A stretch of 64,000 nucleotides of DNA from Raja brachyura (lineage: Eukaryota). The stretch is from NCBI GenBank assembly GCA_963514005.1, contig OY740797.1, forward strand, positions 19,902,001-19,966,000, read 5' to 3'. The notes beneath the pieces are model-generated. The model worked only from the letters and a program-made list of their open reading frames with translations, did no database searches and was not told where the DNA came from. Positions 10,408-18,965 of the stretch are shown here, piece by piece. Position numbers and translations under genes: made by a program. Every line of letters begins with the position of its first letter. The first letter of the stretch is position 1.

Positions 10408-10605
10408 TTATATTTTCCCTGCAGTTTGGAAAAAGCAACTACATTTGGAACAATGCTCATTTAATATCTTACTTGCGCTGTCCAGGGGATTTACCTGTGA
10501 AGAGACGACATGCTGTTCTTCTTGTGGACCATTTGAAAATCCTTTGTTCTCGCTTAAATTCAGTGTAGCATAGGCAGCGGTATGTTCAATTGGTGCTTGT
10601 CTCAC
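10408..10605 (-). CDS. IgSF VJ-C1 receptor copy 1, exon 6 (terminal cytoplasmic exon with tyrosine motif)
   Basis: Acceptor ttttctaatag|GTG, phase 0. Encodes VRQAPIEHTAAYATLNLSENKGFSNGPQEEQHVVSSQV...GKI*. AATAAA downstream. A possible internal donor CAG|GTAAAT at 10495 cannot be excluded. Confidence 0.75.
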   Translation of the reverse strand: MRQAPIEHTAAYATLNLSENKGFSNGPQEEQHVVSSQVNPLDSASKILNEHCSKCSCFFQTAGKI

Positions 10606-11949
10606 CTATTAGAAAATTACATTTAATGTTGCGGGTGACCAGGCTATAGGGAACTCGAATTGTATCTGGGGCTGAAAATCGATGCACGCGGGATATAGAG
10701 GAATAGATTAACATTTCACTTGCTCTCAATGATATTACCAACTATGTCATCTCAAGAAAGGTGGTGGACAATCCTAGCGCACAATGAAGTTGATTTTTAA
10801 ACAGCCACTGAAAACAATCCTCCAAATGGAAACGTTTCCTCAAATCCTCTCATCTCTTTTTGTCATCGCTCATTTCCAGATTCCTACGCACTTCTATGCT
10901 TTCCGCATTGGCGACGCCCAAATTCCTTTCTCTACTGTAGCCTGACATTATTGCATTTATTGGCGGAACCAAAGATTGAAAGTCCTAGGCGATTCCTTCA
11001 TGGGTTCCAAAAAGATAATGTTTCATGTTGCCTGATTTGCCATTGCAGAGTGGAGCTCATTGTTCCTTGTTACCTGGAATAGCAAAAACAGCTAAAAATA
11101 GGGACGGAGGTCCAAGGCCTAGGCCTTTGTGCTAGTAAATTATTTACGGCATGACTGAAGCCGATACACTCATTCGTAAAAGCAGCTCAAGTGATGGCAT
11201 GGCATGTAAGGGGAAGGAAATTATAATAAATATTTAACAGCGACTATTTGGGCGTCTAAGTAAAATATTGCTCACAATTTTGAGTTGTATACTTCAGGAA
11301 GAATTTCGAACACTGGACGAACTTGTTAAAGCATATTATTATGGAATCAATAATAAGTCACTATGGCCTTGGGAAAGTGAAAGGTAGTTCCATCGTTGCC
11401 TTTATACCAAATACCATTAAATGTTAATTTAAGAAATCCATTAAAATAAAAGCGTGCAACATATTAAGCATGCAGAAGCTATCATCCACGTTAAAGGATA
11501 CAAATGCTTTAGATTTAATGTCGTTGCCAGAAAAATCTAGGTGTGTAAATTAAAATATGCACATCCTGGAAATCAGAGGTAAAACAAGAAAATATGCTGA
11601 AAATCACAGCTGATCACGTTGTGTAAATCGAAACGCTGACATTTTCAAGCAATTGTAGGAGGGGTATTGAATCTGAAAATTAACAGTTTCTCTTTCCACA
11701 AATGCTGCCCGAACTGCGGTGATTTTCCAGATATTTCTGATTGAATCTCAATGCGAGATGACGACACATTTATGTTTTAGGCCGCGTGATGGGAACCAGC
11801 ATGAACCAGCAGGCGAGTGTATTGGCGAATACATTTATCCTATATCCTTGTTAGATTCTAATGTTCCTATCTGATTAAATATCGCTCTAATCGAAAAAAT
11901 AAAATAAACTAACCAAACAAATGCAAGGCAGCAGGCCTCGATTGCAACT

Positions 11950-13180
11950 GTCCAGTGGCTTTGACATTCACCAACACGAACTGATTTTTCCAAGCTCGTG
12001 ACGGCGAACATCACTCCAGCCTCCCGGACGACCTTGAACCACTGCAATTCACTCATCACTGCAACTGCAAAGACGACAGACGCAATCTCCCTGTTACCAC
12101 AGCATCGTTAGAAATCTGGATAACACCTACCTGTATATCAGACTCTGAATGTAACTCGGCTTTCAAAACCATTATTCTAATCAAACTAATCTCCCAACGC
12201 CTGGATCAAAGACTCAGCAAATCGATCTTCAACTCGATCCCCACTTCCTGATCCATAGATTGCAGTCAATAAGGATAAACAACCAAACATCCTCCATGGA
12301 AATGCTGAACGTTAGGGCCTCCACAACATTGCTCTCCCGGCCATTTACTATATTCCCTATACATTCACGCCGCTAAATTGCGATTTCACTCGATTAAGAT
12401 GTTTGCGCATGACATCAACATGGTGGAGCAGATCTCGAACCATGGCTAGACAGAGTTCAGGAAGGGGTAGAGAGTTTAGTGACACTGCATGAGGACAACA
12501 ATCTCTCCCTCAATGTGCGCCAAATGAAGGAAATAGTTATTGAATTCAGGAAACGAGGTGAAGTGCACGATCCAGTCTGCATCAGTGGTGTTGGTCCAGT
12601 TTCCTGGCGATTAACATCATCAACAATGTCCAACCACATTAATGCTAACGCCATGAAAGCACGCCAATGCTTCAAGCTTCCCAGAGGACCAAGGAAAGTT
12701 GGACTGTCTCCAATGTCTCTTACCAAATTCCACAGTTGCACAGTCGAAATAATTGTATGGGGTTGAATCCCAAATTGGTTTTAAGTAAACGCAGGGACCT
12801 GTGAATGCAGCCCAGCCAACCACGTAAATCAGCTTCCGTCATTCTCTCCTCTTCCCTCTCTCGGCGGACAGAATACACAGTAGCTTGAAATCGCCTTGTG
12901 TAAGATTCAAAAACAGCTTTATACTCGATGTTGTTAAGTTACTAAACAGGGGTCACGCAAGCTAATGATGCAATCCTGATCTGCGATTTACCTCGTTCTG
13001 GTCCTTGCGCTTTTAAAATATGCACTTTCTCATTAGCTGTAACACCATATTTTGCATTCTGTGTAATTTCTCTTTTTGCACGCGTATGGTTTAATTGTAT
13101 CCATATATGGTAACCATTTTCTGGATTGCACGCAAAATAAAGTTTATAATTGAATCTCGGTGCACATGCCAATTTACCAA
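11950..13180 (+). mobile_element. Old degraded Rex1/Babar-like non-LTR RT fragment in intron 5
   Basis: Remnant peptide EDNNLSLNVRQMKEIVIEFRKR (12479-12766). The homologous copy in paralog 2 is split into 41980-42219, 46234-46319 and 51576-52500. Confidence 0.65.
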
Positions 13181-13844
13181 TGCCAATACAAATATCAGTC
13201 TTTTGCAGATTTTGGAGATTTCTTCTTCTAAGCATTGCAGAGTGGAAGATGCATTCGTGGGATTCAATTTAGCAGCCAGAACAAAATAGTAATTTTGTGG
13301 GAAGCAGTTTCGATGCCATTGTAAGCCATATCCGGTTATATGGCCCTTCGTTAAGGATCGAAGCCAAAACTGTAATTAACACGTTAAAGAACGGCTCAAC
13401 AAAGCAAAGTAAATTCTCGACTAAGGTTCTTTTCATTTTTATTTTAATTACCGTGCTTTGAAATTCAATATAACTTTTGCCTTATTCGTCAGCAACCCAC
13501 AATCTCTTCGTAGTCTGAGATTTGATAGTTCTCACTATCTAAGATTTATTTTTAAGAGTGGCTGCTACCAGAACTAATAACGGGTCACATTTTCATCCTA
13601 AACATCACCTTTCACTTTAGAATATATTAGGTTATGATCTGGCATGGAATTGTCAAAAATGTTGAAGCAGATACAACAGGAATATTCAAATTATTATTGG
13701 ATGTATACTTGACGTAACCTGAAAAAGTAATAATGTTTTCATCCTGCCCTAGAGTATTCCACGATACTATGGAATAAAACCGATTTATAATATTTCTGCT
13801 ACGACTAATCCCTATTTTGAAACAAGAGGAGACATTTCACCTAC

Positions 13845-13888
13845 CGGCTCCCTGTTCTGACGTATTCCTACAGAGGTTACGTTATGCC
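13845..13888 (-). CDS. IgSF VJ-C1 receptor copy 1, exon 5 (short cytoplasmic exon)
   Basis: Long polypyrimidine acceptor ttcattcctctag|GG; 44 nt, (G)HNVTSVGIRQNREP; donor CCG|GTAGGT. Phase 1 to phase 0, joining the TM exon to exon 6 in frame. Confidence 0.8.
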
Positions 13889-17159: not shown

Positions 17160-17362
17160 AGTGTGAGGAAAGAACTGCAGATGCTGGTTTAAGCCGAATA
17201 TATGCTGGAGTAACTCAGCGGGACAGGCAACATCTCTTCGGAGAAGGAATGGGTGACGTTTCGGATCGAGGTTTGAAGAAGGGTCTCGACCCCAAATGTC
17301 ACTCATTCCTTCTACCCAGAGATGCTGCCTGCCCCGCTGAGTTACTCCAGCATTTCGTGTCT
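17160..17362. mobile_element. Inverted pair of Penelope-like tail fragments
   Basis: GCTGGAGTAACTCAGCGGGACAGGCA (minus copy) faces TGCCTGCCCCGCTGAGTTACTCCAGC (plus copy). Confidence 0.7.
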
Positions 17363-18409
17363 CTATACAAATCAGTTTCATCACAATCGACAGCACTAGA
17401 TCGGCGTTAATGATGATAGCGTGCAGAAGCGAAATGAGGGAAAAGAAGAAGCTCTGTTTCTCGCTGTGCAGATTCTACTCATTTAGGTCTGCACGTAAAG
17501 GTCTATCTTTGGCATTTATTAATGCGAACTCCTTCCGTTGGAGCTGCAGTCGGTGTCTAACTGGACGGGGAGTCGATTGTTGTGTTGCTTTTTCAGTTTA
17601 TTACAAGCAATCCCTTTAGAAAGTTTGACTTAATTTACTTAATCAGGATAATTTTTAACGATGAAATAAATGTTACTGTTTATTCCCGGACTTTAAGCAA
17701 TTTCAGTTGAGATGTTGTTTACTTCTTTTTTCCCCCGGACGGTGCCAAATTGGTGGGATAGACTGAAGATGTGCATTACAAAATTAGTGTCAAGCGTTTA
17801 AAAAAAAACAAAAAACATTTCATTGAAGTCAGCTTGGAGTCAGCATCGATGAGTACCACATGTTGGAACACCAAGGTCCTTGGGTTGCCGCTGCACATTG
17901 GTCTTAAATGTGAGGTTTTAAAGCTGTCGATGCAGAATAGAGGCATGGCAGACTCTACGATCGAGGTATTAAAATTGCTCCTACTCTATTTTCTTAGTGA
18001 TGAGAAACCTGGACATCACACTCCAGCCATTCAACTAACAGGAGTATTATTTCAATATCTCATTGCAAAACATTTCTAACCACACTTCAGAATGAATTAT
18101 TTCCATCTCAGCACTTAACCGATCTTAGCAGTAAATCCATCTGGGAGATTGGCTTACGCCCATTCATTGCGGCAATGAAAAGGTGTCTCGCAAAGTCTCG
18201 TTCAATGAACAGAATAACCCTCTGGTGATTATGTACATTGTGCATTGTTTCATTTCGAATTACTGGTCCCTGTAATGCATTTATTTAAATTTGTTATTAC
18301 CGGGTATTTATCAGCAGGCAATTTTTCACATTATCCTCGCGACTTGGTTTTACTTTACAAATGACATGGAACTGAAAATTGCCTATTTCCCTAACACACA
18401 CACACTCAC

Positions 18410-18715
18410 CAAATACAGTGATCTGGCTGCCACTTCCATTCCCGATAACCTGATGCTGGAACTTTACTTGACAGTAATACAGGCCGGAGTCAGCGACACG
18501 CACATGTTGCAGAGTAAATGTTCCGCTTCCTGAATCTATCGTAAATTGTTTTCTACTGTCCGGTTCTAGGAATGTCTTCATGCCACCCCTCCACCAATTA
18601 ACGTCAATAGCGTCTTTCGATATTGGAAATTTGCAATACAAGATAGCAGTTTCTCCGCCGCCAACGTCCAAGTTGATGGGGAATTGAGACACTCTGCTCG
18701 AAGACACTTCGGCGG
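18410..18715 (-). CDS. IgSF VJ-C1 receptor copy 1, exon 2 (V-set domain with germline-joined J-like G strand)
   Basis: Acceptor tttttcccgacag|CC, donor TTTG|GTGAGT, 306 nt, phase 1/1. AILYCKF...VNWW...DSGLYYC...IGNGSGSQITV (B-strand Cys, C-strand Trp, DxGxYxC, GxG bulge). Confidence 0.95.
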
Positions 18716-18910
18716 CTGTCGGGAAAAAAAGCAAGAACAATGGAAACAGTTGTACACACTGGACAGAGAAAACAAGAACCAACTGTCGAAAAGCACGAAA
18801 CAACTATAAACCCACGAGGGCGTAATAGATGAACATAATAGCTCGAAACCAGGTCCGAATTTTCGAAAAATCACACTTAAACCAGAAATGGCACACATAT
18901 TTAACTATAC

Positions 18911-18965
18911 CCTGTCTAAGTATAACCAGAAGAGCCATGGACCAAACTGTAACTTTCGCCGACAT
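18911..18965 (-). CDS. IgSF VJ-C1 receptor copy 1, exon 1 (signal peptide)
   Basis: MSAKVTVWSMALLVILRQ+G, 55 nt, phase-1 donor G|GTATAG (a weak donor); conserved in paralog 2. Confidence 0.72.

Follow-up and report, generated by a model that had tools for sequence, protein, structure and literature searches.

A non-rearranging VJ-C1 receptor gene with a SIRP-alpha-like tyrosine tail, and its decayed duplicate, in the ray Raja brachyura

We present the analysis of a 64,000-nucleotide stretch of Raja brachyura DNA (GenBank assembly GCA_963514005.1, contig OY740797.1, positions 19,902,001 to 19,966,000 of the forward strand; hereafter the window), which carries on its minus strand a gene of antigen-receptor-like design, called here gene A, and the remains of a second copy, copy B. 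Gene A (window 9517-18965) consists of seven coding exons, which join without any frameshift into an open reading frame (ORF) of 1041 nt for 346 amino acids, and its splice borders are canonical throughout, with AG acceptors and GT donors at all sites. A first-pass annotation made from the letters alone had described it as a non-rearranging gene with a germline-joined VJ domain, one C1 domain, a transmembrane (TM) helix and a tyrosine tail of inhibitory type, and this general plan holds. The arrangement of the tail points to a relationship with the alpha member of the signal regulatory proteins (SIRP-alpha, also SHPS-1, PTPNS1 or CD172a), the evidence for which, and against it, is given below. 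All features of the two copies are collected in Table 1.

The first-pass model comprised six exons with AG/GT borders in phases 1, 1, 1, 1 and 0, giving an ORF of 996 nt and 331 amino acids; borders and phases stand, but the 3' end was wrong, as a donor had been read through. This near-consensus donor, TCACAG/GTAAAT (10495/10494; slashes in sequences mark borders), is located directly after ...HVVSSQ, inside what had been taken for exon 6 (10408-10605). A tblastn comparison of the homologous proteins P0030, P0046 and P0027 with the window disclosed a further coding block at about 9529-9660 (E 1.5e-6 to 6e-4), namely exon 7, which is preceded by a strong acceptor, TTTCGCAG/ (TTACTTTCGCAG/). P0030, P0046 and P0160 align up to the exon 6/7 junction and run on into exon 7 with no gap, and residues 1-343 of gene A match the 346-residue proteins of Mobula birostris and M. 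hypostoma with 53% identity (E ~1e-130) and a single 2-residue gap. Because the homologues align end to end over this junction, the 346-residue model replaces the 331-residue one: the predicted product of gene A is 346 amino acids long, and the last 28 residues of the former model (VNPLD...AGKI) are read, from the sequence, as translated intron. The first-pass annotation had overlooked both exon 7 and the degraded copy B.

Within the other exons, the TM segment of exon 4 aligns with the TM segments of the family proteins P0151 and P0160, and a helix is also predicted there in the model of a homologue, while exon 5 aligns without a gap with ...HGISTSSLDRCQNEEP of a Mobula protein. The joined gene A protein was subjected to an ORF check and to local alignment with homologues; for database and fold searches single exons or homologues were used. 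As a side observation, two Heterodontus predictions, the isoforms P0185 and P0186, split just after ...HAQ, which is the counterpart of the exon 6 donor, and P0185 ends soon afterwards; its end may reflect retention of intron 6, and the read-through form of gene A could exist as a minor isoform.

Table 1 Features of gene A, copy B and an intronic repeat (positions in the window; slashes mark splice borders)
Feature	Position	Strand	Description
Gene A, exon 1	18911-18965	-	start codon and first part of the leader (MSAKVTVWSMALLVILRQ plus 1 nt); phase-1 donor GT; 95% identical in copy B
Gene A, exon 2	18410-18715	-	end of the leader and germline-joined VJ-type Ig domain
Gene A, exon 3	16223-16516	-	C1-set Ig domain (PPTPLKIV...CKTGAFYPEKLEIFW...YTCLVSH)
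Gene A, exon 4	14704-14802	-	connecting peptide and uncharged TM helix (IDRKQS IVYAVGGSVILVLIIIVIILS LKIW)
Gene A, exon 5	13845-13888	-	44 nt; juxtamembrane, cytoplasmic (YGHNVTSVGIRQNREP); AG/GT borders
Gene A, exon 6 (corrected)	10495-10605	-	cytoplasmic; motif 1 AAYATLNL and degenerate motif 2 VVSSQT; ends at donor CAG/GTAAAT
Gene A, exon 7	9517-9648	-	motif 3 LTYSTV, motif 4 TVYADV and stop codon; encodes TEGGGHDKLTYSTVQHHNPKKTSASKQNNTVYADVNTSKKTCN*
Candidate polyadenylation signal AATAAA	8928-8933	-	first one 3' of the stop codon, giving a 3' untranslated region of ~0.58 kb; from sequence only
LINE fragment	15118-16013		intron 3 of gene A; 89% identical copies elsewhere in the window
Copy B, leader and V exons	61954-62008, 61456-61761	-	intact; 95% nucleotide identity to gene A
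Copy B, C1 remnant	56086-56298	-	13-nt deletion causing a frameshift, first Cys lost; 3' third missing
Copy B, TM remnant	53892-54008	-	2-nt deletion and in-frame stop

Comparison of the window with itself revealed copy B (53892-62008, minus strand) as a tandem duplicate located about 42 kb upstream of gene A. The V exons of the two copies differ with dN of 0.041 and dS of 0.107 (nonsynonymous and synonymous divergence), and all eight amino acid differences fall within the first 37 residues, from strand A to the BC-loop region, the last 64 residues being identical. Besides the lesions of its C1 and TM remnants, exons 5-7 of copy B were found nowhere in the 64-kb window. Copy B is a pseudogene, that is a decayed duplicate.

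In Pfam scans exon 2 was recognised as V-set, I-set and Ig_3 (about 1e-8; V-set 1.5e-8 with 35.2 bits, the cut-off being 26) and exon 3 as C1-set (2.4e-11, 44.2 bits against a cut-off of 21), and the TM and tail exons gave, as expected, no Pfam match. The V exon contains Cys46-Cys100, the tryptophan pair WW59-60 and YYC, and is continuous from the end of the leader into the G strand NGSGSQITV, which fits the J motif GxG[T/S]x[L/I]xV, after which it splices to C1. A scan for recombination signal sequences (RSS; heptamer, 12- or 23-spacer, nonamer) over the V exon and 1 kb on either side returned a sole match, which has four mismatches and falls in intron 1 on the strand opposite to the gene; with 0.33 per kb, such matches are no denser here than in the window at large. 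Since V and J are contained in one exon and no RSS rises above the background, gene A is non-rearranging. The same two observations, a J-like G strand within the V exon and no RSS in or beside it, had been made at first pass, together with a TM stretch without a charged residue and a connecting peptide without Cys, which likewise can be read from the gene model.

A rearranging antigen receptor, either an Ig light chain (IgL) or a T-cell receptor (TCR) chain, is ruled out, as there is no RSS and there are no separate V and J segments. Gene A shares with these chains the V(J) plus C1 plan of the ectodomain, but it differs from them by the lack of RSS, of a separate J, of the interchain Cys and of a charged TM residue, as well as by its long tail with immunoreceptor tyrosine-based inhibitory motifs (ITIMs), and the identity amounts to about 20-25%. 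The AlphaFold2 model of the V exon, obtained with a predicted local distance difference test (pLDDT) score of 91.5, shows strands A, A', B, C, D, E, F and G, of which the last is split, and a vestige of C' but no C''; its nearest folds are those of VNAR, TCR V-alpha and Ig-beta (TM-score 0.75-0.82). For the two-domain model of a homologue the best Foldseek matches were Fab light chains and TCR beta (E ~1e-14). The fold searches confirm an antigen-receptor-like fold of V(J)-C1 type and do not tell the families apart. Among PDB chains the C1 exon matched Ig constant domains, beta-2-microglobulin and MHC II beta (1e-12 to 1e-8); the single-exon searches with V and with C1 gave generic I-set/V-set and C1 domains, and neither SIRP nor UrIg2 was among the best 60.

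Three of the four tyrosine motifs of the tail are kept in gene A, namely AAYATL, LTYSTV and TVYADV. The second of these is a canonical ITIM, and the third agrees with the pattern of an immunoreceptor tyrosine-based switch motif (ITSM) or ITIM. A hidden Markov model (HMM) built from SIRP-alpha tails only gave 10.4 bits for exon 7 alone and 12.9 bits for exons 6 and 7 together, with a maximum of 9.3 bits in 2000 composition-matched shuffles, and for the tails of homologous proteins the same HMM reached 13-23.6 bits, with per-sequence E between 3e-9 and 6e-6. The SIRP-like tyrosine tail therefore turned out stronger than first claimed, two further motifs lying on the overlooked exon 7.

Gene A belongs to a gene family of cartilaginous fish. 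Two profile searches and cluster look-ups yielded 34 to 52 chondrichthyan proteins with E from 1e-30 to 1e-230, ranging from Callorhinchus to Mobula, and the family is predicted in at least 17 chondrichthyan genomes of chimaeras, sharks and rays. The genera are Callorhinchus, Heptranchias, Heterodontus, Chiloscyllium, Hemiscyllium, Scyliorhinus and Mustelus, and further Amblyraja, Leucoraja, Pristis, Narcine, Hypanus, Hemitrygon and Mobula; in each species numerous paralogues are located on a single chromosome. Word-based protein searches returned chondrichthyan relatives only, which marks a limit of sensitivity and is no proof of absence elsewhere. The V exon is 40-63% identical to family sequences in an exhaustive HMMER search (single-stretch relatives) and 49-63% identical to the members compared, and the C1 exon is 56-69% identical to members, with 69% to P0030 of Mobula. 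The common layout, to which gene A conforms, comprises a leader, a short VJ domain (WW[KR].G...FL, DSG.YYC, GNG[ST]G), a C1 domain with PPTPLKI...CKT..FYPE, a TM helix and a tail; mostly there is one C1 per member, a few having a recent internal duplicate. The tail is kept from chimaera to rays as ..AYA.L[ND]L .. (E)RTVY[AS]QTK .. NKLTYAAL[QD]L .. YA[ED]V.., up to the C-terminus. In the C1 tree the exon of gene A falls within a ray subclade (support 100/97), beside Mobula and Hypanus; the original attribution to a cartilaginous fish is borne out by this nesting among rays and by every close homologue being chondrichthyan.

Two kinds of proteins are found in the family. The long-tailed members have an uncharged TM helix and three to five tyrosine motifs. 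In the short-tailed ones (P0041, P0153, P0180, P0097, P0143, P0189, P0068 and P0170), which occur from chimaera to sharks and rays, the outer part of the TM helix contains an Arg and its inner boundary D/E-H, for example IVIPRLVLG...IIV/DH. Such short-tailed TM-Arg members are probably activating partners of the long-tailed ITIM members, acting via an adaptor with an immunoreceptor tyrosine-based activation motif. Their presence within the family points to a paired-receptor design, so that the family most likely constitutes a paired inhibitory and activating system in which gene A is of the inhibitory type. A similar combination is known from the SIRPs, in which ITIMs and SHP-1/2 mediate the signalling of SIRP-alpha, and DAP12 together with a charged TM residue that of SIRP-beta (PMC12975943). 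The short-tailed members, standing with a basic TM residue beside long-tailed ITIM members, resemble SIRP-beta; they differ in that the residue is an Arg, placed close to the helix's outer third and accompanied by the inner D/E-H, whereas SIRP-beta has Lys.

For the comparison with SIRP-alpha we used ten tetrapod sequences, reached via the lungfish SIRP-like V protein P0100. Aligned to these by hhalign, the family profile gave a probability of 99.8 and E of 3e-30 over 333 columns, in which V is matched to d1, C1 to d3 (leaving out d2) and TM to TM, and the four tyrosine motifs follow in order to the last residues. The tails of SIRP-alpha end in ..TYADLN[LF].. EYA[SC]IQT.. LTYADLDM.. SEYASVQV, and the aligned motifs read taYa.LnL, vYa.QT, LTYAALql and.YA.v in the family against tYADLNf, EYA.IQT, LTYADLDM and SEYASVQV in SIRP-alpha. 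The homologue P0030 has as its closest large clusters in the ESM Atlas 'SHPS-1-like' (0.97, with 209 features shared) and 'Signal regulatory protein alpha' (0.96, with 205). Domain by domain, the V exon has 30% identity to d1 of hedgehog SIRP-alpha with 22% gaps (4e-7), YYC-VKFQ and G.G.Q+TV included, and in BLASTP the C1 exon has 29% identity to d3 (1e-11) and 25% to d2 (1e-8) of the same protein; the family C1 HMM gives on average 39.4 bits for SIRP d3 and 32.6 bits for d2. SIRP-alpha and SIRP-gamma are also within the best 60 PDB matches of the family profile. The apparent link to SIRP is thus carried by the overall collinearity and by the TM-tail region, not by the Ig domains. Taking these comparisons together, we consider it reasonably probable that gene A is an intact inhibitory member of a chondrichthyan non-rearranging VJ-C1 family whose TM-proximal part and tail are homologous to SIRP-alpha.

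Gene A is like SIRP-alpha in being a type I membrane protein with a non-rearranging V domain that has a J-like GxGTxLxV strand and YYC.VKF, a membrane-proximal C1, an uncharged TM helix and a tail in which the four tyrosine motifs of the family, the second without its Tyr in gene A, keep the order seen in SIRP-alpha, at similar spacing and between similar flanks, and end at the C-terminus. It differs by having one C1 instead of two, with d2 lacking a counterpart, and by a V domain that is shorter by about 15 residues and is devoid of C''; moreover, the chondrichthyan family is large and multigene, whereas SIRPs are few genes. The statement that gene A matches no known layout is not supported, given the collinearity with tetrapod SIRP-alpha over 333 columns including the four tail motifs. 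Nor is it supported that the receptor family is undescribed, as it has already been automatically annotated in at least 17 chondrichthyan genomes, often as SHPS-1- or SIRP-alpha-like. The names assigned by NCBI are inconsistent, comprising SHPS-1-like ('tyrosine-protein phosphatase non-receptor type substrate 1-like', equal to SIRP-alpha-like), 'NCR3 ligand 1-like', 'Ig lambda-1 light chain-like', 'tapasin-related-like', 'TCR beta chain-like', 'MHC class II-like' and 'programmed cell death 1 ligand 1-like'. Since the family stands in public annotations under SIRP-alpha-like names and SIRP is a standard example of a joined VJ, gene A is best taken as a two-domain form of a known kind, probably a SIRP-alpha-type receptor, and not as a categorically new receptor family. 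What is left of the claimed novelty, after layout and family are taken away, is an ectodomain unlike that of canonical SIRPs, with its short V and single C1, and the outcome of a literature search, which found no paper describing SIRP-type genes or the VJ-C1 family of gene A in cartilaginous fish; the papers on UrIg and UrIg2 make no mention of this family.

Several observations weigh against kinship with SIRP, or against gene A being a working inhibitory member. With the family profile the V-C1 stretch of Ig light chains reaches 57-62 bits and that of UrIg2 56.7, the value for SIRP-alpha being 99.4 when summed over three domains; with the family V HMM, reptile multi-V ITIM receptors reach 33-61 bits and SIRP d1 15-31 bits; and in the C1 tree the family forms a clade of its own (100/99), outside the SIRP d2 and d3 clades, although in this tree, which has no outgroup, family, d2 and d3 are each supported and the order joining them has 90/34. 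Gene A has only one C1 domain, position -2 of its motif 1 is occupied by Ala and its motif 2 is without Tyr (VVSSQT against IIYSQT). Retroelements are all that the window offers beside the two copies, and the public runs X1, X4, X5 and X6 cover on 13700-19100 LINE and SINE repeats (long and short interspersed elements) and not the exons, so that they have no bearing on expression. In a rival reading the family would be an independent chondrichthyan VJ-C1 antigen-receptor-like lineage, a relic of the precursor of antigen receptors, as is proposed for UrIg, UrIg2 and PRARP, with a tail that was shuffled in or arose by convergence; gene A would then be inhibitory but no kin of SIRP. The separate and fully supported C1 clade, the about equal scores of the V-C1 module with Ig light chains, UrIg2 and SIRP-alpha, the ESM Atlas cluster nearest to the V exon, 'putative antigen receptor' (0.94), the V fold nearest VNAR and TCR V-alpha, the split leader with a phase-1 intron as in antigen-receptor genes, and the plan with one V and one C1, which TCR and IgL chains share, all suit such a lineage. 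We nevertheless find it unlikely, as convergence is hard to reconcile with four motifs of the same order and similar spacing and flanks (LTYA.L, and YA..N/QV at the C-terminus) next to an aligned TM and juxtamembrane region, shuffling would have to predate the chondrichthyan crown, the tail being shared from chimaera to rays, and the hhalign alignment is collinear over the full length. UrIg and UrIg2 themselves are non-rearranging shark genes with a germline-joined VJ exon, a split leader and C1-type domains (PMC12227049, PDB 9dmx), and among the PDB matches of the family profile UrIg2 ranks second (total 3.2e-34; 56.7 bits for the V-C1 stretch). UrIg2 is set apart from gene A, with its one C1 and ITIM tail, by having 9-11 C domains, by dimers linked through disulfides and by the lack of a SIRP-type tail; membership is rejected on the single C1 and on a UrIg2 V-C1 score no higher than that of Ig light chains.

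Much less can be said for a ligand of the B7-H6 (NCR3LG1) type or another V-C1 molecule of the B7/butyrophilin group, which we regard as very improbable. B7-H6 also combines V, C1, TM and a tail with signalling motifs, and numerous paralogues are automatically named 'natural cytotoxicity triggering receptor 3 ligand 1-like' or 'programmed cell death 1 ligand 1-like'; the same clusters are, however, also named SHPS-1-, Ig-lambda-, TCR-beta- and MHC II-like, so these names are unstable best hits. We rejected this kinship on three grounds: on the C1 exon the Pfam models C2-set_3 and CD80-like C2-set fall well short of their threshold (E 0.09-0.13; C1-set 2.4e-11), the best 60 PDB matches of the family profile contain SIRP-alpha and SIRP-gamma and no B7-H6 chain, and the tail aligns with that of SIRP-alpha. 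A further reading concerns the state of gene A and not its origin, namely that it is intact in sequence but silent or on the way to a pseudogene, being one of many recently duplicated copies in a birth-and-death process. Copy B, its neighbour, is clearly dead, gene A has lost one of the four conserved tail tyrosines and has another residue in place of a TM Cys conserved in ray homologues, its introns are full of retroelements, and four public runs gave no coverage of the exons. A search for sequencing runs found none recorded as RNA that contains the locus; a few low-depth contigs of the public runs are located in the bin 18587-18767, and splice joints did not show up in these runs. On the other side stand seven open exons with canonical splice sites and 1041 nt without frameshift, and an identity between the copies of 95% in the V exon against 89% in the adjoining intron, with dN/dS of about 0.38; the runs themselves cover only repeats and are not demonstrably RNA of a relevant tissue. 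The silent state is, in our opinion, improbable.

The reptile receptors mentioned above, P0049, P0059 and P0131 of turtles and P0112 of a gecko, have two to five short VJ-like domains, and the tail of P0112 contains YADL and YAEV; they may represent an unrecognised relative of the V domain of the family.

If gene A is an inhibitory receptor related to SIRP-alpha, its short V(J) domain would bind a putative ligand on the cell surface or of a pathogen, and Src-family kinases could then phosphorylate the tail tyrosines within AAYATL, LTYSTV and TVYADV. By analogy with SIRP-alpha, the phosphorylated ITIM/ITSM motifs would recruit the SH2-domain phosphatases SHP-1/SHP-2, which would damp the bearing cell, probably a myeloid cell or another leukocyte. 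Taken for itself the window permits a more modest statement: it contains one intact inhibitory member, for which a corrected gene model is given, and one dead duplicate.

A farther-reaching version, which we offer tentatively and hold to be less likely than not, would have the family as the chondrichthyan descendant of an ancestral SIRP that still is a two-domain VJ-C1 receptor and expanded into a large and fast-evolving paired set, a germline-diversified innate recognition system of antigen-receptor shape, functionally like the NITRs of teleosts. On this view the SIRP-alpha tail with an attached VJ-C1 receptor would stand, together with Ig, TCR and MHC, at the root of the jawed vertebrates. 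SIRPs are regularly counted among the few non-rearranging receptors with a VJ-type V and C1, and as such they enter the arguments on what the RAG transposon invaded; if the family is SIRP kin, the combination of inhibitory tail and VJ-C1 receptor would go back to the ancestor of gnathostomes, and sharks and rays would retain the simplest layout, with V and one C1. The paired long-tailed and TM-Arg members together with the clustered copies suggest a diversification driven by ligands. Further non-rearranging receptors with a VJ domain are PRARP, a group of VJ-C1 genes of the chicken, and the NITRs of teleosts, as cited in PMC10751288 and PMC11599192.

The remainder of the window is rich in mobile elements. 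Among its ten largest other ORFs, Pfam assigned seven to LINE reverse transcriptases or to DIRS-like reverse transcriptase/tyrosine-recombinase, three being without a match. One LINE family (RVT_1) recurs at 1300-5100, 15118-16013, 28100-28600, 36700-41100 and 57200-58400; what the public runs X1-X6 have in common with the locus is these repeats, among them the fragment in intron 3, and not the exons. At 23100-25100 there is a G/C-rich low-complexity block with long Pro/Gly-rich ORFs on both strands and no sign of a gene. Three DIRS-like retroelements, having reverse transcriptase and tyrosine recombinase/phage-integrase, are located at 42600-45700 (plus strand), 46800-51400 (minus) and 58700-63900 (minus), and the one at 46.8-51.4 kb, with its long open frames, explains the GC-rich block at 48-52 kb (GC 0.52).

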